Below are positions 10,034 through 53,830 of a stretch of 64,000 bases of DNA, piece by piece (the first letter of the stretch is position 1; every line of letters begins with the position of its first letter). The DNA is taken from assembly GCA_965644295.1 (NCBI GenBank), contig CBFFRP010000363.1:62001-126000 (forward strand), in the 5' to 3' direction. The notes beneath the pieces are model-generated. The model was not told the DNA's origin and ran no database searches. It saw nothing but the letters and a program-made list of their open reading frames with translations. Made by a program: the position numbers and the translations under genes. This DNA is from Paraphysomonas bandaiensis (Eukaryota; Protista; Chrysophyceae).

Positions 10034-11360
10034 CTAATTTTTAAAAACAGAGGTACCATCGTGTCTATTTCTAGTTGTCTCTTGAGTTCCATTGGTATCT
10101 AGCGGGCTTTTTCCACCTTTTTTTGGTGTTTTAGGTGTCCGTTTCCCTTTTTTCCCATCGTCTGCTATCTGTGCTTCCAGCTCCACTAGATCTTCCCCAC
10201 TAGGAAGCTTGAGGTGCAAAGGGATAGAGGGGGCAACTGAAGTAGAGGGGTAGATAGAGTACGCAAAAGCCGCGCTGACGACTGTTGTTGCACCCAACAC
10301 AAATAGAATGTTAATGTCTGATGCTTCAAGAAATAGAGATGACACGACGCAGGATATCACTACCGAGAAAGAGGTCGCGAACCCCTTCAAAACGTTGTCG
10401 GCGTACATTACTACACTGGCGACCACCTACCGACATATATAATTTGTATGTCCAGTGATGATGATAGGTGAAAGCAAGATTCATGAGTACCGTACATAAT
10501 ATATCGAGAAGTACAATGTGAACGTGGAAAAACGTACCAGTCCTCCCCCTGCCTGGAGCAAGATAACAAGCCACACAATAGCATTGTATCCTCTAAAGAA
10601 ACCCTCCGTAGATATAGCCTCCAGGTCCTGGGTTACACACACAGCCTACGTATATTTATGAATGTCCACGCTAATAAAATTGGGATCATACCGCAGCAAG
10701 AATAAATCCTATCATAGAGAGATGCATATTTCGCATCCATAGTGGTAGCTTTCCGGACTTAAGAACCTTCTCAAAGTATACTCCGGAGAATCCTGAGGTC
10801 ACACAAGAAAATAGTACACATATAATTCCAAACAAACTATCGCTATCTGGGCCCGACCCATCCTGATGTTGGCTATACTGCACGAGAGCTACACCTAAAG
10901 TCAAGGCTAAGATGCTCACCCACTGTGGTCCCGAGAGCTTGCGAGATAGCATCGTGACTGAAAATATTGCCGTTGTTACAATCTTAAGCTGTGATAGAAC
11001 TTGAAATATCGACACGGGCAGGTTAGATGCCGCTAGATACTGAAGGTTATTCTGCACAACATAAAGACCCGATGGAACGCATAGCTTCAGCAATTCGATG
11101 CGATTATCATAAAAATCATCCCGATACAAACGTTTGATTTCATCCCAACTACACAGCGATGATACATGAGGGCCGTATATAACCATAGCCGATACAAGGA
11201 ATTTAATCATCTCACTGAGAAGGACAGCAGTGGATATGATGTAACGGGAGGTTTGATCTCCTGCTATTCTTGAATATCGCATTATTAAAATAAGACTGCA
11301 GTTCTGAACTACCAGCACAGCTAGTACCATCATACGAGTCTTAGAGTCTTTGGAGTTCAT
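10034..11360 (-). CDS. Nucleotide-sugar transporter, SLC35A family (UDP-galactose/CMP-sialic acid transporter-like)
   Basis: LVVQNCSLILIMRYS, STAVLLSEMIK, VPSGLYVVQNNLQY, QLKIVTTAIFS, SGFSGVYFEKVLK, LWMRN, YADNVLKGFATS. Three exons. Confidence 0.92.
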
Positions 11361-11641
11361 TGGGATATGATGGGGTTGTTGTTTCACACGGGAGGATGAT
11401 TAGAGAGTATATGAATTATTGCATTACTTCTATGGTGATAGATATGTACAAGTGTGTATATATGTGTGTAGGTATGATAGGGCTTATAAGTGATATAGAG
11501 GGGTAGAGGGAGGGGTCATAGATACATGGAAGGCGTAGTACATACCACTATTATCACTTCACCTCACTTCATTGAAAGTTATTCTTTATAAACCCCACGT
11601 GATACATGCAACATACCTACCGACTCTGCATATATACACAG

Positions 11642-11793
11642 TACATACATACATACATACATACATACATACATACATACATACATACATACATACATAC
11701 ATACATACATACATACATACATACATACATACATACATACATACATACATACATACATACATACATACATACATACATACATACATACATACA
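11642..11793. repeat. (TACA)38 microsatellite in the divergent SLC35A/PI3K intergenic region
   Basis: Perfect 4-bp tandem repeat read directly from the sequence. Confidence 0.98.
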
Positions 11794-12068
11794 TAATACA
11801 CAAGTACAATCATACTTATATAATCACGTACATACGTACTTATATACATGATGTCGATGTATATCGTAGTACACATACATATCATCCTCATTGCATACAT
11901 ACAGTAGCATATTGTAGTTTCAGTAGAGTATGCGGAGTCGATGCACACACTATGGATCATACTGTAACACTCATAACACTACTAATCAATAAACATCACT
12001 GCATTTTCCCTGCACTGCTGATATATGTCACCCAATAGGCATTAAATTCCTTTGTCAGTGAATTAACC

Positions 12069-15000
12069 ATGGCCTATTACCGTCACAGTGATAGCTCTGA
12101 TGGCGATGATGCGCATATAGCGCCCATTGAGTTCAGTGTCGCGATAGGGGTCAATAGACATCTCCACTACCGTCAAGAGAACGGAATATTCACTTTCCAG
12201 AACCCCATATACTCCACACAGCCGGTTAAGTTTGATATCGATGTGCAGTTAGGGTCAGAGATGCGTCTGAAGGATTTTCTGGCTAGTATTCCTTCGTTTT
12301 CAGACTTCTCAGAGCAGCAGCTGCTGTTACTGGAGCGGCGGGCGAGTATCAGTAAATACCAAAAGGGTGATGTTATTTTTTATCAAGGGCAGAAGGGGGA
12401 TGCGTTTTATATTGTTCACTCGGGCGCGGTGGATATAGTTATTCAGGAGGATCTCTCACTCATTGCCACCGGGGACCTCGGAAATGTTGTAAACAAACTT
12501 ACAGAAGGGTGTTATTTTGGAGAACGCGCTTTGATGACGTCAGAACCTCGTGCAGCATCTGTAAGGGCGAGTCAAAATACTGTTTGTTTGGTGTTCAGCA
12601 GACAGACTTTTGAAGATGCCATTAGTGGTAGCAATGCGCTATTGGGTAACGACATCAATGACAATGTGGACTGGTCGAAGGATCACGAAACGCGCAGCTT
12701 GTACAAGCATATTGAGAAGATATTGAAGATAGAGAAGATGGACTGCTCTATCAAAATTAGACGTATTCTCTACGAGCTGACCACAGCTTTTACCCCGGAG
12801 CTCTCGGCGGATGCAGTAATTGCCCGTATGGTGATGACTATCAAGCTGGCTCTCAAAGGCGACAGGGTAGGATTATTCATGTTGTCAGAGGACAAAAATA
12901 GCATGATATTAAAGGTATCAGAGCGTGCCAAAGGCATTCGCCTTCCAATCAAGGGTCTTGCTGGATGGGGAATTGCCAATAACAGTCCCATCAATATACC
13001 AGATGCGTATAAGGACGACAGGTTTGACTCCACGATGGATAGGCGTACCGGATATAGGACCCGACAAGTGCTAGGGGCTCCAATCAGACAACCCCTCACT
13101 GGTAAATATGTCGCTTGTATAACTGGGTGATACATCAGTAATATATTCTCGTTGTGCAGGGGAGTGTGTAGGATTGCTTCAAGTCAACAACCGCTTGGAT
13201 GGTAGTCACGATCCCTTTACTGAGGAGGAACAGGGGTTCATGGAGCTCGCCTGTGAACAGCTGTCTGACCTTCATTACGGTCGTGCAGATGTATTTGTTC
13301 ATGCCGGGCTGAAGAATGCCACTGAAGGAGAAGGAGCTGTAGTGTACACAGCTGATGTGGCCACTCCGTTCCAGGTAGAGCTGATATCTTTCAACTTCCA
13401 CCCTGGTGAGATAGTCGACCCGTCATACAAGTATTTCGAAGTTGTGGTTTCGTTGCACCTGGGGGTGAGTCAACTCTGTCACCCTAGATCAGTCGTGGTA
13501 GAAGTTCCTGTTGAGGGTGGATCGCACCGTCGACCTAGCGTGGTGAGAAATACGGGCGAGATGTCCATCAATTTGCGACACAGACTCATATTCAACATAT
13601 CCACCTGCAACCTTCCCCGAGCGGCACGTATTCATTTCCGTGTAGGAGGAAGTAAGAAGAAAAAGGGGCCATTTTTGCCTGTGGGCTGGGCGGCATCACC
13701 AGTATTCGATTTTAGGGGTTACATGGACTGCCAGGTGTCCACCTCTCTGTTCGAGGGTGACAATGAGGTGCCGATCAACACCACACTATCCAACACGCAT
13801 AACGACAGGGCCCCAAGCTTATCTACGGTGCTCTGTGCTGACCTTCTACTCGCCTCGACGTCATCTCCCAGTGTGGCAGTTGTACACAGTCTTCCACCAC
13901 CCCGGTCCACATCTCTGCAGGCGAGATGTGATCTCACTGAAAGCGATCGCCCAGAGCTGGAGCGTATCCTCTTGTTATCCTTCAACCCTATGAGTAACTC
14001 TATAATGACCGCAGAGGACAAAGCTTTTTTATGGGATCTTCGATACAGTATCATGGATAGGCCAGAACTACTGGCAGCATTCCTCATGAGTGTGCAGTGG
14101 CAGAACGCGGAGCATGTACAGGAGGTAGGTGTCAACTAGGTACTGCAATATTCCTCTTATACTGTGGCAGGTATATGAGCAACTTGATCTTTGGGAACCT
14201 CCACTACCTGCACAAGCCTTGCAATTACTTGACCGCCGTTTCATGGATCCCAAGGTTCGCGCGTTTGCTGTTCACTGCCTTGAGGAATTAGATGACGATG
14301 AATTGGCTCTCTACATGCTTCAACTCTGTCAACAGCTTAAATTCGAGAATTACGCAGACTCGGCCCTCAGTAGATTCCTCTTACGGCGGTCTCTCACGAA
14401 CAAGAGGCTTATAGGACATATATTCTTCTGGCAGCTTCAGTCTGAGATATATAATGTAGACGTCAGACAGCGATTTATTATTCTCTTACAGGTGAATTAT
14501 TTTTTGTAATAATCTAACTGCAATGATAACATGGTTATGGCTAGATCTATATTCGCAATTGCGGACACCACAGAATTGAATTAGGTCATCAAATGTTTGT
14601 TATGAAGAGACTGGAGAATGTTGCCGAGAATGTGAAGCGAGGTGAATCTAAATCTGACCGCCTCAGTATACTTCGAGAGCATCTGAGGAAGACTGTTCTC
14701 CCAAAGGAATTTCAGCTGCCATTGAACCCTCACATTAAGGTGTGTTTTTGCCGAATTCAGTATTGCGTTTGTTGGGTGGAGATTATGATATTCGAATATA
14801 TTTGATGTGTGCTTATGTTTTGTACTCTAAATCAGGTGCGCGGTATCGATGTTGAAGAGTGTAAGGTTATGGAGAGCAAGAAGAAGCCCTTATGGCTCAA
14901 TATGATCAACGCGAAGCCAGCATCCCCAAACATTGTGCTGATGCTCAAGGTGGGAGACGACTTGCGACAAGACATACTGATTTTGCAGTTGCTACGCGTA

Positions 15001-15993
15001 ATGGACGATATTTGGCGCAAGGAGGGGCTCGAAATGGAGATGATGCTTTATGACTGCATATCTACAGGGTTTGAAAGAGGCCTACTTCAGGTGCGAATGG
15101 TATTTGCTGTAGTCATCTCACATTAAGTGCTAAATACAGGTTGTTCAAAACGCTACAACCCTGGGTCGGATTTTAATGGATGCTACCAACAAGAAGAGCT
15201 CTGGTAAATTGGGTAGGAAGTTCGGGTCAGCCATGAAGGCTTTAAAAGACTTTGATGTGCTCAAAAACTGGATATGGGAGCAGGTAGGGTGATGTACATA
15301 GTGTGCTGAATTATTTGGCGATTGACCGGTCTCACATTTCACAATTGGGGTGTGTAGATATGTGACTCGATGGACGACGCAGATGAAGTAGGGAAGCAAC
15401 AGGAGCTTGAAAAGTATGTTAACTGTAAATATTTTGTGTTTGGGCATCATCTGTTCTTCTCCATGACACTTACTGATACGTTAATTAAATTGAACAGGCG
15501 AACGCAAAACTTTATAATATCAACAGCTGCATATTGCGTGGCGAGTTATGTCCTCGGGTTGGGCGACCGCCATAATGACAACCTTATGATGACAAAGAGT
15601 GGACATTTTTTCCACATCGACTTCGGCCATATTCTAGGTAACTTTAAGTACAAGATGGGTGTTAAAAGAGAGCGGGCACCATTCGTGTTCACCCATGCTA
15701 TGAAAGCAGTGATGCGCGATGACCAGTTCGAGCAGTTTGTGGACCTTTGTATCGATGTGTACAACATACTACGAGAGAACGCTATGTTGCTGGTGTCTCT
15801 ATGCTCGCTGGCAATACCTTGCAATCTCCCCGAGTTGCAGGAGGAGAAGGATGTGATGTGGCTATACGATAAGCTAATGGTCAATGCTACAGATGAAGAA
15901 GCGGGCGACCATTTCAGAGAGCAACTTATGGTGAGTCTTAACACTAAGGGTACCAGGATCAATGACGCCGCGCATATGCTCAAGCATGCGTAG
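12069..15993 (+). CDS. Class-I-like phosphoinositide 3-kinase with N-terminal cNMP-binding and GAF domains (about 1154 aa)
   Basis: Exons 12069-13101, 13160-14124, 14171-14491, 14545-14739, 14836-15090, 15140-15283, 15358-15413 and 15498-15993 join in frame (3465 nt). cNMP: FGERALMTSEPRAASVRA. GAF: NIPDAYKDDRFDSTMDRRTGYRT...GLLQVNNR...FTEEE. C2: CNLPRAARIHF, VGWA. Helical: ALQLLD...VRAFAV...LQLCQQLKFE. Kinase: MESKKKPLWL, KVGDDLRQD, GLGDRHNDN, HIDFGH, KRERAPF. Confidence 0.93.
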
Positions 15994-16576
15994 TGAGCTG
16001 GTTTCTATAGTCTACATCTATAGCATTCTGTGTTGCTGTTTCTTTGTTGCCTATGAGCGTATACATCTTAGAGGAACAGTGTTTGTGATTGCGTCGTTGT
16101 GTATTAGTGAGTCGCCATGTTATAAAATTGAACTTAACGATGTACGATATGAATACTAGTACATGCACTATGTCATCTGTACTTATCTAGTATTTTCTAT
16201 TTTCTAAGCGCCACCTATCTAGTCGAGCACTACCCTACTACTAATTTACAATTTACAGCATTTCCTCTTTTTATGAAAGAATAATGAGAATTCACCATTA
16301 TATATTAATGTAACACATGCCGAAGGGTAAGCAAACACTAGTAGGAATAAATTACTCATATACAGACACGATGAAATTAATTGCACTTGCGGCTTCTTTG
16401 CTGTCGAATTTACTGTATGTACAGCACATACTACAACGCATAAATACAGTTACCATACTCCGCTATAGAATCACTACCCCATGTGTACTCAGAATAAAAT
16501 GATTGCTCAAAAGAATTCCGCAAGTTAAAGTGAGAGAGATCGCAGTTTAATAATATATCAATTTTAAAGTAAAATT

Positions 16577-23175: not shown

Positions 23176-26100
23176 TCACCGATTTTCGTCGAAGTACTTC
23201 GCAAGTGATTGTACATTCAGTGGTTTAGGCAGAATCTGACTTGCTCCTGCAGCTAGAAATATATCAACATCAGAAGGCATTACATTACCGGTTAGTCCTA
23301 TTATGTGACCGTTATAGTGCAGGCTCGTTCGAATTATCCGAGTAGCTTCTGGGCCACTCATACGCGGCATAATATAGTCCATTAGGATTAGATCAATAGA
23401 AGTCATTCCATCATTTTTCTGCAAGTCATTGCGAACAATATCTACTGCTTGGGCACCGTCCACCGCTTCTGTACACTCAGCACCATGGACAGTAAGTACC
23501 TTTACAACCAACTTGCGCACCAATACGGAGTCATCCACCACTAGCACCCTCTTGGCACGCAAACAGCTGTAATCTGGCGATGGCGAGGTAGAACGGCTAT
23601 GAAAACTTCCTGATCGACTAAGTGGTCGGTTACCATCCTGTTCACCCTCTTTTCGTCGGTAGGAAGGAAGACGAAAGTAAAATGTGCAGCCTTGGCCCAC
23701 ACCACCACTTGACATACCTACATCACCACGGTGAAGCTTCACAATTTTGTTAGAAACTACACGAATAACAGTTAACGTGGATATGTACAAAAGCTTATCA
23801 CTTACTCCAAAGGCCAAGACCAGACCCACCACCACCCTGCAACTCATTCGGTGAAAATTGAATAATTTCATTGAATATCTTGCACTGGTTGTCCTAAGCA
23901 GAACATATCACGTAAAGTAATCAGAAAGTACGAGGAAACAAAACCTCAGAGATTCCCACGCCGCTGTCAGTGACCTCAAGCCAGAGGGTACCACACCTAA
24001 TGTATCCCGGATCAGTAGGTTCGGATATTGGCACGGACCCTTCCGCTTCTGATATTAAACCTTCAAAGGTGTCTTCAGACATGAGATCTAAACAACATCA
24101 GTCAAGGAGATTAGTTGGGTAGCTGAGACATATATCTTTTCAGAATGTTGGGTTCGGAATGTCAAGCACACGGTGGAAATGAGAAAAACATACCACCCAT
24201 ATAGTCATCCGTTCGGATCGCTAAAGATACGGTTCCACCAGCAGGGGTAAACTTAAGTGCGTTCGATACCAAGTTTCTTATCACCTATATGAATACAAAT
24301 TACCCACCAACCACGTGTCGAATATATAAATAACTCGTGCGCACAGACCTGACAAACTTTGCTGCAATCTATATCTAAGTACCTCTCCTCTATATCCCTA
24401 TCCTCTATATTTACCACCAAAGCAATATCTTGTTGTCTAGCCTGCGTATATATCAATACTATAAAAATAGCAATCACGAGACTGTTACCTGGAGGTAGAA
24501 CGGCTTTACAGCTTGCAGAAAAAACGACGAAGCAACAACAAAGTTTCGGTATAATTCGAGGATGCCGCTCTCAAGCTTTTCATATGAAAGTAGGTCATTG
24601 AGAATGGAAACCGCGATATCGATAGAAGAGATGCAGTCCTGTAAACTCTGAACTGCATCGGCGCTACCCTCAAGTTTTCCAATCTCAGAATCCAACAGTT
24701 GAAGCCCCAGTTTTGCAATTGTAAGTGGAGTTCGGATTTCATGACTGACGTAACGTACGAAGGTCCGTTTGATAGCCAGAGTGCGCTCTGCCTGCTCGGC
24801 CGTTTCTTTCATCAGTTGAATCGTGAGTTGTCTCTGCTCATCGAGGGCACTGGCCATACGCCGTCGATTATCTGCTTCGGAGAACAGATGTTCTATCTGT
24901 AATACCATGTCCAGCCTACAGTCGTGTTTAGACAAATGGCGTATATTGATGCCACTATTGAACATATCCGACAATCTCCGAACATTCGGTACACACAACA
25001 GAATACACCGCCTTCCGTCCTCTGTGATGCAAACCTGTCCCTTGACAGCCAACGAAACACCCCTGCAAGCCTCATCCGGTAGCAGGGCTATCTCACATTG
25101 CGAGTAGTTAATAGAACAAACCTGATTCCAGTCTCTCCATAGATAAGAGTTCGGCGGGTTTCTAACTTCGAACACTTCTTGCATGTGTCTTCCTATTATT
25201 GTGGTCTTAATAAACTCTGTGAGGTGTTTCCCGTGACTGATAATCTTGAATTCACTGTCAAATGCAACGAAGAAAGGAAACAACTCCTTCATTTGATTTT
25301 CGTTTATTGACAACGGCGTGTTTTCTGTATTGGTTTCGTTCTCAGACGATTCGGTCAAGCATTCTCCAGGGTGAATACAAATGGGGTTGCTGTTGCTCCT
25401 GTTCTTCCGCTTCTTCAGTGTTGATTCGTCAGAAGAAGTCGAAGAAACAATATGCGGTGCAGGGGCTGTTCCGGAACTGAAAGGACACCTCACCGGACTA
25501 GTAACACAGCGCTGAATATCCACAGAGAGTGCCGGGCAATGTTCTCCACTTTCGTTCCCATTTTGTACAGTAAGGGTCCCATTAGGCCCATCACCACTAG
25601 TCCCGTCAATTGTTGTGCTCACAATGCGCCATGATGTGTGCGAATGGTCGACACTCTGCAGTTGCAACAATTCGAATTCCAATATGGTACGATAAAAATA
25701 CTGGGAAGCCACCTCACGCACCATACCCACCACTATAGGGTAGAGAGATGCACCACGACTGCTCTTGTAATGAAGAAACACAACATCATCTCGGTCGGTC
25801 TCCATCTCACACCTATATATGAACAAAGTATCTCAATAAACTATGTGTATACTGATAGCATATAGCATACCAGAACTGAGGTGCTTTCATATCCGGCAGT
25901 GCTACCATGAGGTGATTATGCAAAGAGTTGATGTTAGATAACCACTCATGAAATGTGTCCCCTAAACACCTCAACAGATTATCATACCCTTCCTGTCGAC
26001 AATACTGAACAAAATAAGCACCAAACTCTTCTAGTACAGTCTCTTCTGTGAGTCCAAGGAGATCCGCAGCGATAGACACTAGAGTATAGGTCGACTCGTC

Positions 26101-45243: not shown

Positions 45244-48200
45244 CTACTTATTGTTTCCTATCGGAGGCAGAGAATTCATTGTACCACTCCTGCTTAGGTA
45301 ACTCTTGGGGGGGTCTAGTTTCTTTTTCTCTTTCGTCGTTGGAGAAGATACCACAGTCGACCCTCTGGAAAGAGGAGGGGTCATACTGCGCGCCGAGAGT
45401 CTCTTCTGCTCTGCAATCCTAGCCTTCGCCCGGCTGCCAGGCCTCGTCGGACGACGTATACAATCGTACTCCAAGTGGTCTGCCAACTGGCGCTGCCGCA
45501 CCTGTACCCCACACCCAAGGGTACAAGAAACATGCAACATATCACACACCGTTTCCATATGCCTTTGGAGCTTTTTATGCATAACAGTCAGGCCACATCC
45601 TGAAGGACACAACACCATACGATACTTGCATTCCGTGCGCTCGTGCTTTTCCCGGTCTTTGTAGGGAAGTCGCTTGGCACAACCGTTTAGACGGCACCCT
45701 ACAATTCGGGTCTCGCAAGAAGTTCGCATGTGAGCTGCTAATTCCTTCGCTTTCATTTCTTGAGCACACATGCCACACCGTAAGTGACGTTCTGGGCAGT
45801 CCACTTTGATATGAGATTTCATTTGCTTTGCCGGAAGACGGGTTATTTCCTCAGCAACACCACTGACAATAGTCGTGCACCCTAATTCACAATCCACTAT
45901 TCTGTTCATGCACTCATTCTTGTAGTGATTCTCAAGGTCTATCTCACGTACTTGCAATCCACAATCATTTCCACATGGCACAAAACGGTGCCTACACTCA
46001 GTTTTAACATGTTGTTTCATGTCTTTGGCTCGAACTTCACCGCCACAATGTAGTTCGCATTCGACAAACCGATGATCACACTTTGGCTCGTGACGGATCC
46101 ACACGCAATTCTCCATTGTTTGGTTACACCATTTACATACTTCTGGTCGGCGTGGACAGACATCACGGACATGATGAGGAACGGTTCGGTAAATAACCAG
46201 TGCTGCACACTTCAGCGGGCAGGACACACGCCGATTAACGCACTGTGTACGAATATGTTCCAGACGCTTGATGATAGGATAACTCTCCCCACAAAGCTCT
46301 GTGCACTCCATCATCTTATATAGACATGTTTTTTGATGAGCCACCATCTCCTTTGCAGGAACAAACGTATCGCATCCGAGATTACACATCACCAACCTGT
46401 GGGGACACTTCTTATCTTGGTGCTTCTGGTCATCACAAAGTCGATATACCGCATGACATTTACTACACTCATGAGGGCGGTGTGGGCATTCAATCTTTAA
46501 ATGCTTGTCAACATCTCTCGCAATGATATGTGGGTCACCGCAACCCAGGGGGCAATCAATCGAACGAAGCAGACAGGTCGGTATATGATCTTTTATCTCA
46601 TGCTTATGCATCACCTTGCCACAACCCATGGGACAATTCACGGCTTCGTTGATTGTACCACGCTTCACGGCTACCTTACCAAGAAATCCGCCCTTGAATT
46701 GCCCGATGACTTGAAGAACATCAGAGAATCCAGCCTCGAGTGCAAGGTCATATGGATACTTGCCCTCATTGTCTGGCATATCTGGGTCTGCACCACGGTC
46801 AAGTAGAAGTCGTACACACCGAGCGCTCCCATTTTTTGCAGCAACATGTAGCGCTGTATGTCCAAATCTGTTCTGCCTATTCACATCTGCGTGTCTATCC
46901 ACTAATGCTTCCACACAGTGCTCACGCCCGAGAGCACATGCATGCAGTAGTGGAGTATTGCCATTTTTACACTCCACGTTAACACCAGGAGCCCTCTCGG
47001 GTCGGTCCAAAAGATAACATACTGCCAACACAGGGTCACCATCATCATTGATGATGTACTGATGATGTAGCCCTCCAATATTTTCCTCCGCGGCTACTAT
47101 CAGGGCAGTGAGGCTATCCTCAGTTTCGTAATCTATGGAGCACTTATCCTGAAGTGCATAATCCATACACTGTTTGAAATTGGCTGTCTTTATTGCATGT
47201 GTCATGAGCTTTTGGTTCGCTTCCTGTTGACGGGAATCCTGAATGAGAATACGAATCCGGTGGCGCTTCGACACATACTCAGCAATTTCAGCAGTTATTT
47301 CACCCCATAATTGTTTTAGATCAACGCGGCACTCCGAAAACGGGTCCAGTTCATGAAACCTCCTCAACCAACCTTGACCAGGAACTAGTATACCCGCGGA
47401 AAAGTCTTGATAACCTGCTTCCACGATATCAAGGAAGTCGTACTTTTTCCCTTTGAGGTCAAGACGTCGATGAACGCGAATGCGTGGCGGCGGAGGGGAA
47501 GGGTGTGTCCATGAACCCATGAAATTCACGTTGAGAAGCCTTCTCTCTCGAATTCGCTGCACAATGCCAGAATGACCACTGTACGCGGCTTCCGGTACAG
47601 GAAATCTAAAATTCCTTCGCAACCTATTGATTCGAAAAACAAGCTTTTCACGGTGTGCGCGGAGCTCAAACATGTCCTCCACGCCGTGACCTAGCTTTGT
47701 ATCCATTGTCTCTTCTGCATTCATTTGCGCTGCTGCTGACAACACTGACCCTTCAAGAACGACAGATTTTCGTCTAATCTCTCGATTTTCGGAACCACTG
47801 CTCTGCTTCTTTAACTCCCTTTGCATGCGTTCTTTAGCAAACGATGAATGATAGTAAAACAAACGGAAAGTGTCTTGAATCACATTCGCAGACATATGCA
47901 TTAAATCTTCATTGTAGCCCACAGGTGCCCCTTTAGACAGCAGCCAATCAACGACTTCATAACATCCATTTGCAGCCGCCCAACTGATGACCGTATGTCC
48001 TGATGATGTAACCTGATTAAGCAGCTTTGTGACACGTAATTTGTCCTTATTTTGTTCAATACGCTTGCGAAATGTCAGCAACTTCTGAATCTCATTGTTC
48101 ATTTCGTTCTGAACCATATTACAGCGCGATACTTCTGTGTCATATCTCTGCTTCGACATATCGCGAATTTTTTTCTTCTCGTCATACACTGACTTGGCCT

Positions 48201-51200
48201 GTTTCAAACTTTCCATATTATCATTCATCACCACTAAGTCATCCATCATTACTGACACAGCATGCATGAGAAGTGTCATACAGTTCACAAACGGTAGGTC
48301 GACAGACTGGCCGGGCTCCTCAACTTTTTCTCTGTGTAGCACAACTTCGTGTCCAGCAACTGTCTCCTTGACAATGTCTGCACTCTCAACAGCTTTATCT
48401 TCAGCATCGTCCTCTACACGGCACCCGCTTGAATGAGGCATTTCCTTCAGAAGCTCTGACATCACCACCACATTATTTCTCTTCTTCTTAAACCCTTGCA
48501 CCTCAACGTCAGATGGCTGTTTTTTCTTTGTTTCGTCATCTTTGTTACGTTCCCACCATCGTGCTTTCTTTTTCAATATCGGTACCCACTCACCCTTTAT
48601 CCACTCCCCACCACCTCCATCCTCAGCATCAGAATCCCAGTCAGCACGAGGAATTTCTTCGTCCTCTTGCCCTTCCGAATCGCCTGCAGATTTAACTTCA
48701 GTGTGAGACGAACTATCGTTGTTGGGGTTGAGGTATGCAACTGCATGGCTATCAACAGAAGCCATCGTATGCGCCTCTTCTTCCCGCTCTTTCGCAGCTT
48801 CGATTTCTAACTGTGAATATAAGGACTTTATTTTGTACCCGAGCTCCGCCATATGACGAGACTGGAGTGATATCCACGAAAACGTGCGCATCTTCTTGAG
48901 CACTTCAGCACATTCAAATAAATTTCTAACTATAAGTGGCCACCAAGACTTTATTCCTGCCATGTCAACCGCGTAGTCATGAAGCCGACTTGTATCAAGA
49001 ACACCAAACAATAGTGCATAAGCCAAGACTGCCAAGCGTGTTGACGCCGAAGGTTGTCGCATGGCAGCAATTTCTTCCAGATCATAAGGGCATAGCTTGG
49101 CAACGGTTTTATCATATAGCTCAAAACGAGACCCAATTAAATTTCGTAGTCGATTAGCCTCCGTCATGTAAGAATCATACACTGCTCTCGTTTTCACTTC
49201 AACCTCATCATCCTTCTCAAAAATATCCTTTAATTTCACACATTCGTCCTGAAGTTCTTTGAGATGATCCTTGTATCCAGCCACAATTTCCTTGGACTCC
49301 CTTGTACGAGTAAAGTATTCTTCCATGGATTCTTGAAACCTTTTCGAATTGGTCGGTGTAAAGAATTCACCGTCCTTAATAATTTCCCATACTTGATCGT
49401 TGTACCCAGCCGCCGTCAGGCGAAATATCTCTTCCACTTGCGTTTGGACAACAGAGCCGATGTCTAAATATATATATAGTTCTTCATGCTTCAAGATTCC
49501 TGCCCAATCCAAGGCGGATTTCGCATGCTTACGTGTTTTGAATTTAACTATTGCTCCAGCAGATATGAGCATTTCAACAATCTCTCGACAGTTTATTTTC
49601 GTGGCTTCTATCAAAGGAGTCTTTCCGCTGGACGTTTCCATGTTAATATCTGCACCATGATGGATGAGTAATTCAACAAATTCAATTTTGCGAAAACGGC
49701 ATGCCATTGTTAACGCAGTGTCGCCATATTTATCCTGCAAGTCAAGGTCTTCTCCCCCCGACTTCTCAATTATATACTTAGCCAATATAATCTCATCATA
49801 GCGAATAGCATACATGAGAAGGCTACGTCCATGCATAGGGCACGACAGTAGCCGAAGTCCCTCCTGCAAAATCAGCGTTCCATTTTTATAGGACACAGAG
49901 GTACTCGTTTGCGCTATGGATAGAGATTTACTGTCAATTGACGCGAGATCCCCATCACCGTCAAGTGAATCACTGTCTTTATTTTTGCGATGGTTATACA
50001 GAATTACTGCTTCGTTGTTACAATCAGGAATTGTTCTCCCAATAGTAGCCTCTTTCGAAAATGGCTGTATAGAAAACGATATACTCGCCTTGAGGCGCGG
50101 CTTGCTTCGTCTTATACTATCAATTGACTCATCATCAGGTGGTACAGTAGAGGATTCATCATCTGGAAAATCTTCATCATCATCTTCTTTGTAGAACCAC
50201 TGGTGTAGTTTAAATTTGCACGTCGGCATTCCTTTCTCACAATATAGAGGACGATTTGGACATATTCGAATATGATCTCCCAATTTTTCCTTCTTAAATG
50301 TATTCCCACATCGAAACGGGCATTCAGTTAAGCGACGCTCACAGTTATACGTGACATGTTCAAGTATCTCTATGCGCTTTAAGCGAGAACCACATTTGAG
50401 AGGACAAGGAACTAATTTATTTTGAAACACATGTTTATTGGGACAGTTATGCTCCATATGATAGTCCAACATATCTCGTGTAATGACTTGCTCACAGCCC
50501 TGCGGACACAGCCCGGGCTTCTTAGGACACTTGGTAATGAGATGGTCCGATCGCTCGTAGTATATGTACTCTTCGCCGCATTCGCAAGTGTACATGCGAT
50601 TCTCACATTCATTAAGTGCGTGGTGCTCTTCTGTACCAGCCGTTAGGTTAGCTATACCGCACTTATTTCGACATTCTACAATACGAGATGTGCAATGATT
50701 CTCGGCATGATCGGCGAGCTCGTCGGCCCACATATCAGCATTACACTTGGGGCATTTAACATTGCGTTTATCGCAATCTGATGCCATATGTTCCTCAATT
50801 TGCTTTCGCATTACTCTTTTACCACATCCAAACTTACATCGCACTAAAACGTGGGTACAGTCGTGCTTCACGTGCCACTCAACATTGTCAGGGGGAATTT
50901 CAATAGAGCAATACTCACACGTAATGTTCTCCGGTGGGGCTACTAAAAACTCGTTTATTTCATGTCGCACTAAAGCAATGTTCAAACTAGTTTTCGCTTT
51001 AGCAAGTTGGCCGTCAAATGCATTCAAGCTCTTCATCAGTGAATCAGTGCCTAGAGACGAACCCATTGCGCCGCTGCTTATATTTTCATTTTCAAGCTCG
51101 TCAACATTATTCAATGCTGGCGCTGGCACACCGTACGTGATCTCTGTCAATGGATTCGCTCCACCCACAAGTAGCTCTCTGTTGATACAGTCATTGTGCA

Positions 51201-53830
51201 AATGGTCATTCAACTGGCTGTACTGTATCCAACCGCAAAGATATTTCCCGTCTGACGAATTCTCACCATTTAAGCCTTTCACCTGAATCCTCAGTGGAAC
51301 AATATCAGATGTCCAAAATGGTAGCCATACGTGGCGATTCTCAAATCGAATATAAACCATGTCAACCCCATCAGCGCACCACGAGAGATCCCCACGGTCG
51401 GGCGGTTTGACAATAGTTTCGTCACTTTTATCCTCAATATCCTCCACCTTGGTAAGAGAGTCAAGGCCATCACGTTTATACTTAATTATCAACCCTTCCT
51501 CTCTATTATGAACGAGAACACGCCACCCAACAAGGTTACTGGGACATCGAACACAGCGCTCAGGGCACGAACCGTGCCATGGGTCCAAGTGCTGGTACAA
51601 TTCGGTCCTCAACAGCTTCGCACCACAGTGATGTGGGCACTGCATAACCGCTAAAGAACAGTAGTTTTTCTCGTGGTCACTTTTGTTTCGCGCGGTCATT
51701 CCCACAATCCCGCAGTTGTTGGCGCACTCAACTGGACGATTGGGGCATTGAGTCATTTCGTGTAACGCACGCTTCTGGGCAGGACCAATACGCTCTCCAC
51801 AACCCCATTTGCATTCTTGTACACACAAGTGTTCCTCGTGATATTGAATATCCACAATGTTGAACCACTCAAAGCAACCTTTCGTACATTGTACTTGGCG
51901 AGATGGGCAAGTGTCCTTCATATGGCTGGGTAGATCCTCAGATGGGATCATGTCGTTGCATTGGTAGCACGGTATCTTCCGCTTCTTACAGTGATTCCTT
52001 TCGTGATCATCTCGAAATATAACTGGAAATTTTTTATTACAGTGTAAGCGACAATAAGCGAGTCGATAAGGACATCGGAGATTGACGTGGGTCTCCATAT
52101 AATGCGCTTGTACAAGGTCTCTACATCCCAATTTAGCGTTCGGACACCCCAGAAGTCGTTTAGGGCACTCGCGTGTAAGGTGATGGTGCATATGATAAGC
52201 AGGGTGAACCTCACTACAATCACCACACACCGTCGGTTTATGAGAGCATGATTCCCGGACATGAGTGGTCATTTCCTCAAACTTTGTTTTATATCCACAT
52301 CCGTTCCAACAGAGTACAGGTGAGGCCATCTCGGTCTCTTTATCTGCACACCTATACCACATCTCCACCCTCTCCTTTACCACACGTAGAATATTACGAA
52401 TGTTATAAACTTCAACTGATTTACTCTCAGCAGTTTTCAAACTGAATGCTGCCGTCAGAAAGGCAGAAAAGTAAGACGAGTCGTGAGTATTTTGAGTCTG
52501 TCTGGATTGGCCAATTGAACTAACATCGATAAGACTGGCCTCCTTTGAGTCACACAGAGTAGCGGAATTATTATCAGCAGATTGCGGAACACTTCGACAC
52601 GCGCTGCGACATATGCTCTGGTCATCACTATGGTGTCCTGTATTTGCTGTTGATATGCTATTGCTATCATTGATACCCAGACTCTCCGCGTCACATTCAC
52701 CACTGTTCCAGTTGGAAATCTCCATCCCAGGTATTGTCTCGTCAGGAGGAAGCTCGGATAATAGCGATGATGAGTTCTGATACACCACATCAGCGCTGGA
52801 ATAGATATCTGTAGTTGGAATGAGGTCAATTGCCGTGTACCCTTCGTGGTCTTTAATCTGCACAACAGAGAACAAAATATGATTGCAAGTCATACCAAAA
52901 AGTATCGCCATAATAAAAATCAATACACATAGCAGTTAATATAGTGATAATAACATGACATATCTTCAATTGCAACATGAACAGGTAATTTACCATGACA
53001 AAATTCTGGAGAATTTCTGCATACTTTGTCCATCTTTGAGGGTCAAACTTTGTGAAAGGGTGTGTTATGGTGCGAAACATGCTAAATTTCTCAAACATGA
53101 CGTCGAAAAGAACACTAACTACTCTGGACTTGGCATACATACACGCGTAATGGAGTCCAGTTCTGCCCTCTGCGGTGGTGTGCGATACGTCGGCACCCTT
53201 CAATAAGAGTAGGCGTACCACATCAGCATTACCACACAAACACGCCCAGGTAAGGGGGTTATGACCATACTGATTAGATTTGTTAATGTCGCACTTCAAC
53301 TCCAGTAGTTCTCCCACAACCTCTTCCATGCCAAGCCCAGCGGCACGGATCATTGGAGTGTCACCTTGTTTGGTTTCACAGTCCGCAAAATAAGTTTCAT
53401 TATCAAGGTCAGCCACTACTTCACGGCTTAATTGAGAAGATGTTAGTATGCGAAGCACTCTGTCTGCATCCTTATCGTCTAGAGCGTCTTGTAGCGCTCG
53501 TGTCAATTCACCATTAGATGTGCGGGTAACCACTTCCACCGACTGCACAATACCAGCGCGATGCATGCGAGCCTTGTTCAATGCCTTCGACATGGCATCA
53601 GTGAGTAACGCAATCGAGCGTTGGTTGTTCTGCATTCGAGCCCAGTCTAGAGCTGTCCTTCCCTTCATGTCTTTCTTAAACAATTGCTCTGTATCCACAC
53701 CTGCCAGCAGCTCCGCCAAATGGGCGTAGTCATTGCTAATCGCCGCTCGCATCAGGTCAGTCAGTTCGCTATTTCCCTTCAAAAGGGTTCTCAGCGTTTT
53801 GTTTTGGTATGATTTGGTTAAGTCTGACAT
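45244..53830 (-). CDS. Giant ankyrin-repeat / TRAF-type zinc-finger protein, about 2816 aa
   Basis: Exons 53830-52994 and 52857-45244. Ankyrin repeats (GRTALDWA, GHNPLTWAC, GDTALTMAC, GNTPLLHAC, GHTALHVAA) alternate with two long arrays of CxxxC...H...C TRAF fingers and coiled coils. Confidence 0.9.

Follow-up and report, generated by a model that had tools for sequence, protein, structure and literature searches.

The window examined here is a stretch of 64,000 nucleotides from Paraphysomonas bandaiensis, a marine chrysophyte flagellate (GenBank assembly GCA_965644295.1, contig CBFFRP010000363.1, positions 62,001 to 126,000 of the forward strand). Positions 12069-15993, on the plus strand, hold a gene of eight exons (1154 codons and a stop, no exon with an internal stop), the introns of which measure 46-96 nt and have GT..AG ends throughout. 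The predicted protein is formed, in this order, by a cyclic nucleotide-binding (CNB) domain, a linker, a GAF domain and the C2, helical and kinase domains of a phosphatidylinositol 3-kinase (PI3K) (Table 1). The 5' leader includes a six-codon, out-of-frame upstream ORF (12025-12045), and a (TACA)n microsatellite of about 150 bp (11645-11795) separates the gene from a divergent nucleotide-sugar transporter gene (10686-11387, minus strand). Elsewhere in the window, both on the minus strand, are an ORF with HNOBA and histidine kinase domains (24474-25826) and a 2559-aa ORF rich in ankyrin repeats, which also has three TRAF-type zinc fingers (45244-52923). Searches with the window were run exon by exon, whereas the full-length analyses used the database record P0218 (see below).

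Table 1. Features of the CNB-GAF-PI3K gene (positions in the window; aa, residues of the predicted protein)
Feature	Position	Strand	Basis or remark
5' untranslated leader	11969..12068	+	RNA-derived contig starts 11969-11989; in-frame stop 12036
Exon 1: N-terminal segment, CNB, linker, most of GAF (aa 1-344)	12069..13101	+	
CNB domain (aa 65-186)	12261..12626	+	Pfam PF00027 3e-20; best solved relatives apicomplexan PKG and PKA RII CNBs
Phosphate-binding cassette F150-S164 (G151, E152, R153, R161, A162)	12516..12560	+	Row conservation; PfPKG E483/R484/T493 equivalents
Conserved CNB-GAF linker (aa 187-225)	12627..12743	+	63% mean identity in close members
PDE/CyaB2-type GAF (aa 228-394), split by intron 1	12750..13308	+	Sequence and model matches
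Intron 1, 58 nt, phase 1, inside GAF	13102..13159	+	Joint seen in all four RNA-type runs
Exon 2: last GAF strand and helix, C2 domain, first third of helical domain	13160..14124	+	
Altered NKFDE motif, in exon 2	13189-13233	+	
C2 domain, in exon 2	13336-13836	+	
Helical (PIK) domain (aa 603-785), exons 2-4	13933..14580	+	PF00613 3e-50
Exon 3	14171-14491	+	
Exon 4	14545-14739	+	
Lipid kinase domain (aa 786-1154), exons 4-8	14581..15993	+	
Exon 5	14836-15090	+	
Kinase P-loop	14866-14892	+	
Catalytic Lys876	14947	+	
Exon 6	15140-15283	+	
Exon 7	15358-15413	+	
Exon 8	15498-15993	+	Stop codon 15991-15993
DRHNDN	15565-15582	+	
DFG and class I-type activation loop	15619-15684	+	
3' untranslated region	15994..16155	+	RNA-derived contig ends 16111-16155

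Two contigs from two studies, X1 (3683 nt) and X2 (3722 nt), each hold all eight exons and all seven exon joints, and X3, from a third study, has the same joints; these contigs were taken as RNA-derived by guess, every intron being absent from them. A contig from a polyA marine metatranscriptome (X5) has six of the joints and a loose end that matches the seventh. Since X1 to X3 begin upstream of an in-frame stop in the leader, the ATG at 12069 is the start codon and there is no hidden upstream exon with an adaptor-binding domain (ABD) or Ras-binding domain (RBD). P0218, a complete ORF of 1154 aa in the Paraphysomonas transcriptome MMETSP1103 (taxon 36769), shows 100% identity to the seven exons compared (7/7); it may share its strain or its runs with the window and supports the gene model rather than representing an independent organism. 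For the view that two adjacent genes, or a chimera of assembly or prediction, lie behind the architecture, there is nothing beyond the general risk of draft genomes, and it is ruled out, to the point of a vanishing probability, by the single contigs that cover all exons in two studies, by the complete transcriptome ORF and by the occurrence of the same domain order elsewhere without any interruption of the frame, for example in the intron-free ORF of the Hondaea genome. Thus, the CNB-GAF-PI3K fusion is real, as the first-pass annotation had claimed, and is expressed as a single chain; the intron that splits the GAF was also placed correctly there, and exon 2 is indeed common to the last GAF strand, the C2 domain and part of the helical domain.

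Pfam searches with P0218 identified cNMP_binding (96-186), GAF (249-380; 9e-12), PI3K_C2 (480-535; weak), PI3Ka (603-785) and PI3_PI4_kinase (873-1104); exon by exon the same domains were matched except for the GAF, which was missed on exon 1 alone. No match to the RBD (PF00794) was found in P0218 at E 0.05, nor any Pfam match to the adaptor (p85)-binding domain, and the 5' end of the transcript is complete. An AlphaFold model built with 99 family rows (pLDDT 87.8, pTM 0.86) has complete CNB, GAF and C2 folds; as the PI3K core makes up only 65% of the chain, the pTM value suggests that the N-terminal domains take a definite place on the core. In a Foldseek search with the model, p110alpha was the best match. 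Structural alignments to p110 (VIA-align) start at residue 187 of the model against residue 116 of p110alpha and p110delta and residue 153 of p110gamma, that is, at the ABD-RBD linker. The structural register sets Gly193 on Gly122 of p110alpha, in agreement with a likeness of the two linkers seen by eye. Homology of the linker sequences was not upheld: a linker profile found no match in the PDB or among RBD-type proteins, and the profile-profile comparison with the p110 linker (P=0.042, 1.3% probability) is suggestive only. The model is suggestive of a CNB in the slot of the ABD and a GAF in the slot of the RBD, with the old linker retained, and the proposal that CNB and GAF replace ABD and RBD agrees with the places that they occupy in the chain. 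Mean identity among close members of the family (see below) is 59% for the CNB, 66% for the GAF, 69% for the kinase and 40% for the C2 domain; the linker has conserved acidic residues (D201, D205 and E207).

The catalytic residues are intact, as the first-pass annotation had noted. Lys876 is found in 61/61 rows, and DRHxxN and DFG, here DRHNDN (D1013-N1018) and DFG (D1031-G1033), in 45/46. The C-lobe, activation loop included, finds its best matches in p110beta and p110delta; the basic loop aligns to both and reads nearly as in p110beta, with K1040, K1042 and R1047 conserved, so that its description as class I-like is borne out. A class I-type activation loop goes with the use of PI(4,5)P2, which suggests that PI(4,5)P2 is a substrate of this kinase. 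The C-terminal PX and C2 domains of class II enzymes are absent, the protein ending with the kinase domain, and so is the PxPPP activation loop of class III (Vps34), in place of which the class I loop is found. Identity as Vps34 or as a class II enzyme was rejected on the activation loop, on domain content and on the presence of a separate, true Vps34 in the genome (G000:C108); a top rank of Vps34 fragments in VIA-align was set aside since those rows span the helical and kinase part only. By its predicted accessory domains the enzyme is outside classes I, II and III, and it probably works like a class I enzyme. The p85 and p101/p87 subunits are limited to holozoans and vertebrates (PMC4617754).

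In rows from chrysophytes, MAST-4 and thraustochytrids, the cassette of the CNB domain is nearly invariant: Gly151 is kept in 91/91, Glu152 in 90/91, Arg or Lys at position 153 in 91/91 and Arg161 in 97/97, and the strict pattern Gly-Glu...Arg-x-Ala/Ser is matched in 88 of the 91 rows. This accords with the earlier description of an intact cassette with a cAMP-type Ala after the Arg. That Ala162 is present in 78 of the 79 close rows; among 18 distant members, the position is Ala in six, Thr in four and Asn in three, and the choice of nucleotide may differ within the family. In the CNB-D domain of PfPKG, cGMP is selected via Thr493 and Arg473, and the cap over the nucleotide is provided by Arg484, which upon activation pairs with residues of the C-helix (PMC4412288). 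Both determinants of cGMP selection are absent here, where Ala162 and, in strand 5, Asn142 take their places, and R153 is the counterpart of the capping Arg484, for which the conserved acidic residues of the linker are candidate partners; the CNB points to cAMP or to weak selectivity.

The GAF domain was described in the first-pass annotation as of the PDE/cyclase type and as a second cyclic nucleotide sensor. The first part holds, since it matches the GAFs of PDE5, CyaB2 and PDE10 at 1e-12 to 4e-9 and is recognized by Pfam in P0218; the second is weakened. If both CNB and GAF bound cyclic nucleotides, for example cAMP and cGMP, the kinase would be a coincidence or ratio detector, and the close relationship to PDE5 GAF-A, CyaB2 and PDE10 argues for such a two-site sensor, as does a lid that is nearly invariant across the rows. 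The exon-1 part, however, has as its top single match the GAF from an HD-GYP enzyme (4mcw), which we take to be a dimer domain without bound cNMP. Contacts in GAF-B of CyaB2 are made by R291, T293, I308, D356 and N359 (PMC4411481). Of these five, three are kept or conservatively changed (R266, V283 and D324), and N359 is replaced by T327, as in PDE5; against the two-site sensor, T293 corresponds to G268, a Gly in 80/80 close rows. Likewise, the NKFDE positions read N-R-F-E-Q (N355, R356, F364, E368 and Q369), and the Asp is present in only 3/81 close (chrysophyte-type) rows, whereas it is kept in 17/18 distant rows, most of the distant members having N-K-F-D-E; substitution of NKFDE residues by Ala reduces or abolishes binding in PDE2, PDE5 and PDE11 (PMC11977230). 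Binding of a cNMP by this GAF is, on its residues, possible though rather doubtful, and a two-site sensor is unlikely. The strong conservation of the domain indicates that it matters, and a structural relay, a dimer surface or a sensor of another or weaker ligand is a more likely role than that of main nucleotide site.

The first-pass annotation had proposed a search for this architecture across eukaryotes, and a wide stramenopile subfamily emerged, with chrysophytes, MAST-4 and thraustochytrids. With exon 1 as the query, many proteins were found in which a CNB and a GAF precede PI3K domains, and a search with a full-length relative as the query returned 80 clusters, centred on chrysophytes, all of them with one or more PI3K Pfam domains. 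All members that carry organism names are stramenopiles: Paraphysomonas, Ochromonadaceae sp., Epipyxis, Spumella vulgaris, chrysophyte H1 and MAST-4, as well as Hondaea fermentalgiana and a Thraustochytrium-type record (MMETSP0198), both of which add an N-terminal WW domain. The identical domain order is found at more than 30 metagenome loci. In a tree of helical and kinase regions (33 rows), a branch with support 100/99 sets apart the 25 GAF-type sequences, which adjoin RBD-type sequences, including a copy from this genome (G000:C395); the rows omitted from the tree were long, partial, unlabelled or nearly duplicate, and Vps34 and two divergent RBD rows were among them. A quick tree of 71 rows was less clean, the GAF-type group being split where long branches met. 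Judged from these sequences, CNB-GAF-PI3K is a conserved subfamily, widespread in stramenopiles, and not a one-off. In the ESM Atlas, ordinary PI3K clusters only were found.

Related arrangements were also encountered. Four metagenome contigs (L035:2227-7860, L039:335-6244, L061:2578-7410 and L056:384-6368) carry two or three CNB domains ahead of an RBD-type PI3K core; L056, with a weak RBD match, has in addition three SH3 domains and canonical cassettes. As these lie outside the GAF-type clade, CNB domains seem to have been fused to a PI3K on more than one occasion. A CNB without a Pfam-detected GAF is found in PI3K ORFs at L050:584-5446 (with a weak PH match), L059:628-6075, L072:3603-8822 (with the linker of the family kept) and L092. 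The CNB-linker-GAF part was also found on a 2.6 kb contig in P0026 (CAE7869984.1), labelled as Pde11 of Symbiodinium sp. KB8; this is probably a fragment of a CNB-GAF-PI3K member, and the Symbiodinium label is to be taken with caution.

Besides Vps34, the genome has an RBD-type class I/II PI3K (G000:C395; L017 2806-6033, minus strand), with the only RBD (PF00794) match in the genome; it shares with the thraustochytrid CNB-GAF PI3Ks a WW domain at the N terminus. The GAF type is therefore an extra paralogue beside a Ras-regulated enzyme, not its replacement. A second GAF-type PI3K lies at about 175000-180500 of G000:C125 (L016 3000-8500, minus strand), and small exons with CNB remnants rule out that it is a GAF-only enzyme; a metagenome scan with an exon of this paralogue gave no match. 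By eye, its cassette seems to have lost both the Glu and the Arg, and in its GAF the Asp and Glu of NKFDE are still present, with Thr for Lys, so that the predicted pattern is roughly the reverse of that in the window gene (CNB decayed, GAF motif better kept). The genome also yielded 42 cyclase, 11 PDE, 3 PTEN-C2 and 144 PH matches; by these predicted domains it has makers, erasers and readers for both messengers, cyclic nucleotides and 3-phosphoinositides. A 2293-codon open frame (G000:C164 43869-50450, minus strand) with guanylate/adenylate cyclase, PH and PDE matches is a possible cyclase-phosphodiesterase fusion, and a 2802-codon open frame (G000:C297 810614-817027, plus strand) has about 14 tandem PH domains.

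We propose, with a probability of roughly 0.6, that the window gene codes for a class I-like PI3K on which a cyclic nucleotide, most likely cAMP, acts as a direct switch via the CNB domain; a single chain, intact predicted binding and catalytic residues and the conservation of CNB, GAF and kinase are consistent with this reading. cAMP would occupy the cassette, and the CNB hinge and the helices that follow would shift, as in PKA and PKG. These helices would continue into the linker, which would lie against the helical and kinase domains at the place taken in p110 by the ABD-RBD linker, and the shift would alter activity on membrane PI(4,5)P2 or PI4P, Ras and p85 not being needed. By analogy with other effectors of the CNB type, activation of the kinase is the preferred direction, perhaps twice as probable as inhibition.

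Conservation of the cassettes indicates that binding has been under selection, but does not indicate the same for control of catalysis. The CNB might bind a cNMP and govern location or partners (membrane, flagellum or phagocytic cup) rather than rate, or CNB and GAF might mainly stand in structurally for ABD/p85 and RBD. Regulation of class I PI3Ks is in large part a matter of recruitment, the two domains hold the ABD and RBD places of the chain, and a WW domain has been added in the thraustochytrid members, all of which would fit such a role; so would the C125 paralogue, which keeps the architecture with an apparently dead cassette, so that the fold can presumably persist without binding by the CNB. 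Nevertheless, ligand-contact residues that are near-invariant in about 95 sequences are unexpected for a purely structural domain, and the hinge runs straight into the conserved linker on the core. We consider this alternative improbable and favour the direct switch. For the family as a whole, somewhat better than even odds can be given to a PI3K subfamily that dates back to the divergence between ochrophytes and thraustochytrids plus MAST-4, and in which a lipid kinase would be gated directly by cAMP or cGMP and yield PIP3 or PI(3,4)P2 without Ras, PKA or Epac, and in which paralogues may split sensing between CNB and GAF.

Enzymes with a fused CNB include Epac, neuropathy target esterase, Dictyostelium GbpC and the mycobacterial cAMP-regulated acetyltransferase, and the oomycete GPCR-PIP kinase fusions likewise join sensor and effector enzyme in one chain. 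To our knowledge, none of these is a PI3K, and the cAMP inputs to PI3K that we know of are indirect, through PKA, Epac-Rap or GPCR-Ras. We found no description of a CNB-GAF-PI3K in the open full-text literature, subscription journals lying outside the search, and such proteins are unmentioned in surveys of PI3K evolution and in a CNB survey; to that extent the signalling link is undescribed, as the first-pass annotation had supposed. Database records of the family carry automatic names (phosphatidylinositol 3-kinase, CRP-like cAMP-binding protein). A single-chain, cNMP-gated PI3K would be a new type of effector on the short list of cyclic nucleotide receptors and a direct link between two core eukaryotic messengers, cAMP and 3-phosphoinositides. 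It would also illustrate how a small molecule can act on the p110 core through its ABD/linker side, and a chemically switchable PI3K might be designed after it. In chrysophytes and MAST-4, which are abundant grazers in the sea, control of feeding or swimming by this enzyme is open to test, a role at which we can only guess, and the intron-free ORF of Hondaea, a cultured thraustochytrid, makes tests practical.

Bikont class I/II PI3Ks were described as having exactly the order RBD-C2-PIK-kinase (Philippon et al., 2015; PMC4617754); cNMP or GAF domains are unmentioned in the text of that study. The present family corrects this view, in that not all non-unikont class I/II PI3Ks carry an RBD. With the ancestral class I/II PI3K of SAR, Excavata and Haptophyta (PMC4617754) the window protein shares a branch of the superfamily, the GAF-type clade adjoining the RBD types, but it has a CNB and a GAF where the ancestral enzyme has an RBD. 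Its CNB resembles those of PKA regulatory subunits and apicomplexan PKG in the canonical cassette and in the Arg after the Glu, akin to Arg484 of PfPKG, and differs in being single, in the Ala and Asn at the cGMP-selecting positions and in having a lipid kinase as effector. The GAF is like those of PDE2/5/6/10/11 and Anabaena CyaB2 in fold, in lid sequence and in three of the five CyaB2 contacts; unlike them, it is a single GAF with an altered NKFDE and a Gly at the Thr293 position. Finally, p110alpha/beta/gamma/delta share with the window protein the C2-helical-kinase core, the catalytic Lys, DRH, DFG, the basic loop and the placement of an ABD-RBD-like linker, whereas the window protein, on its own branch of the tree, has neither ABD nor RBD and carries a CNB and a GAF instead.
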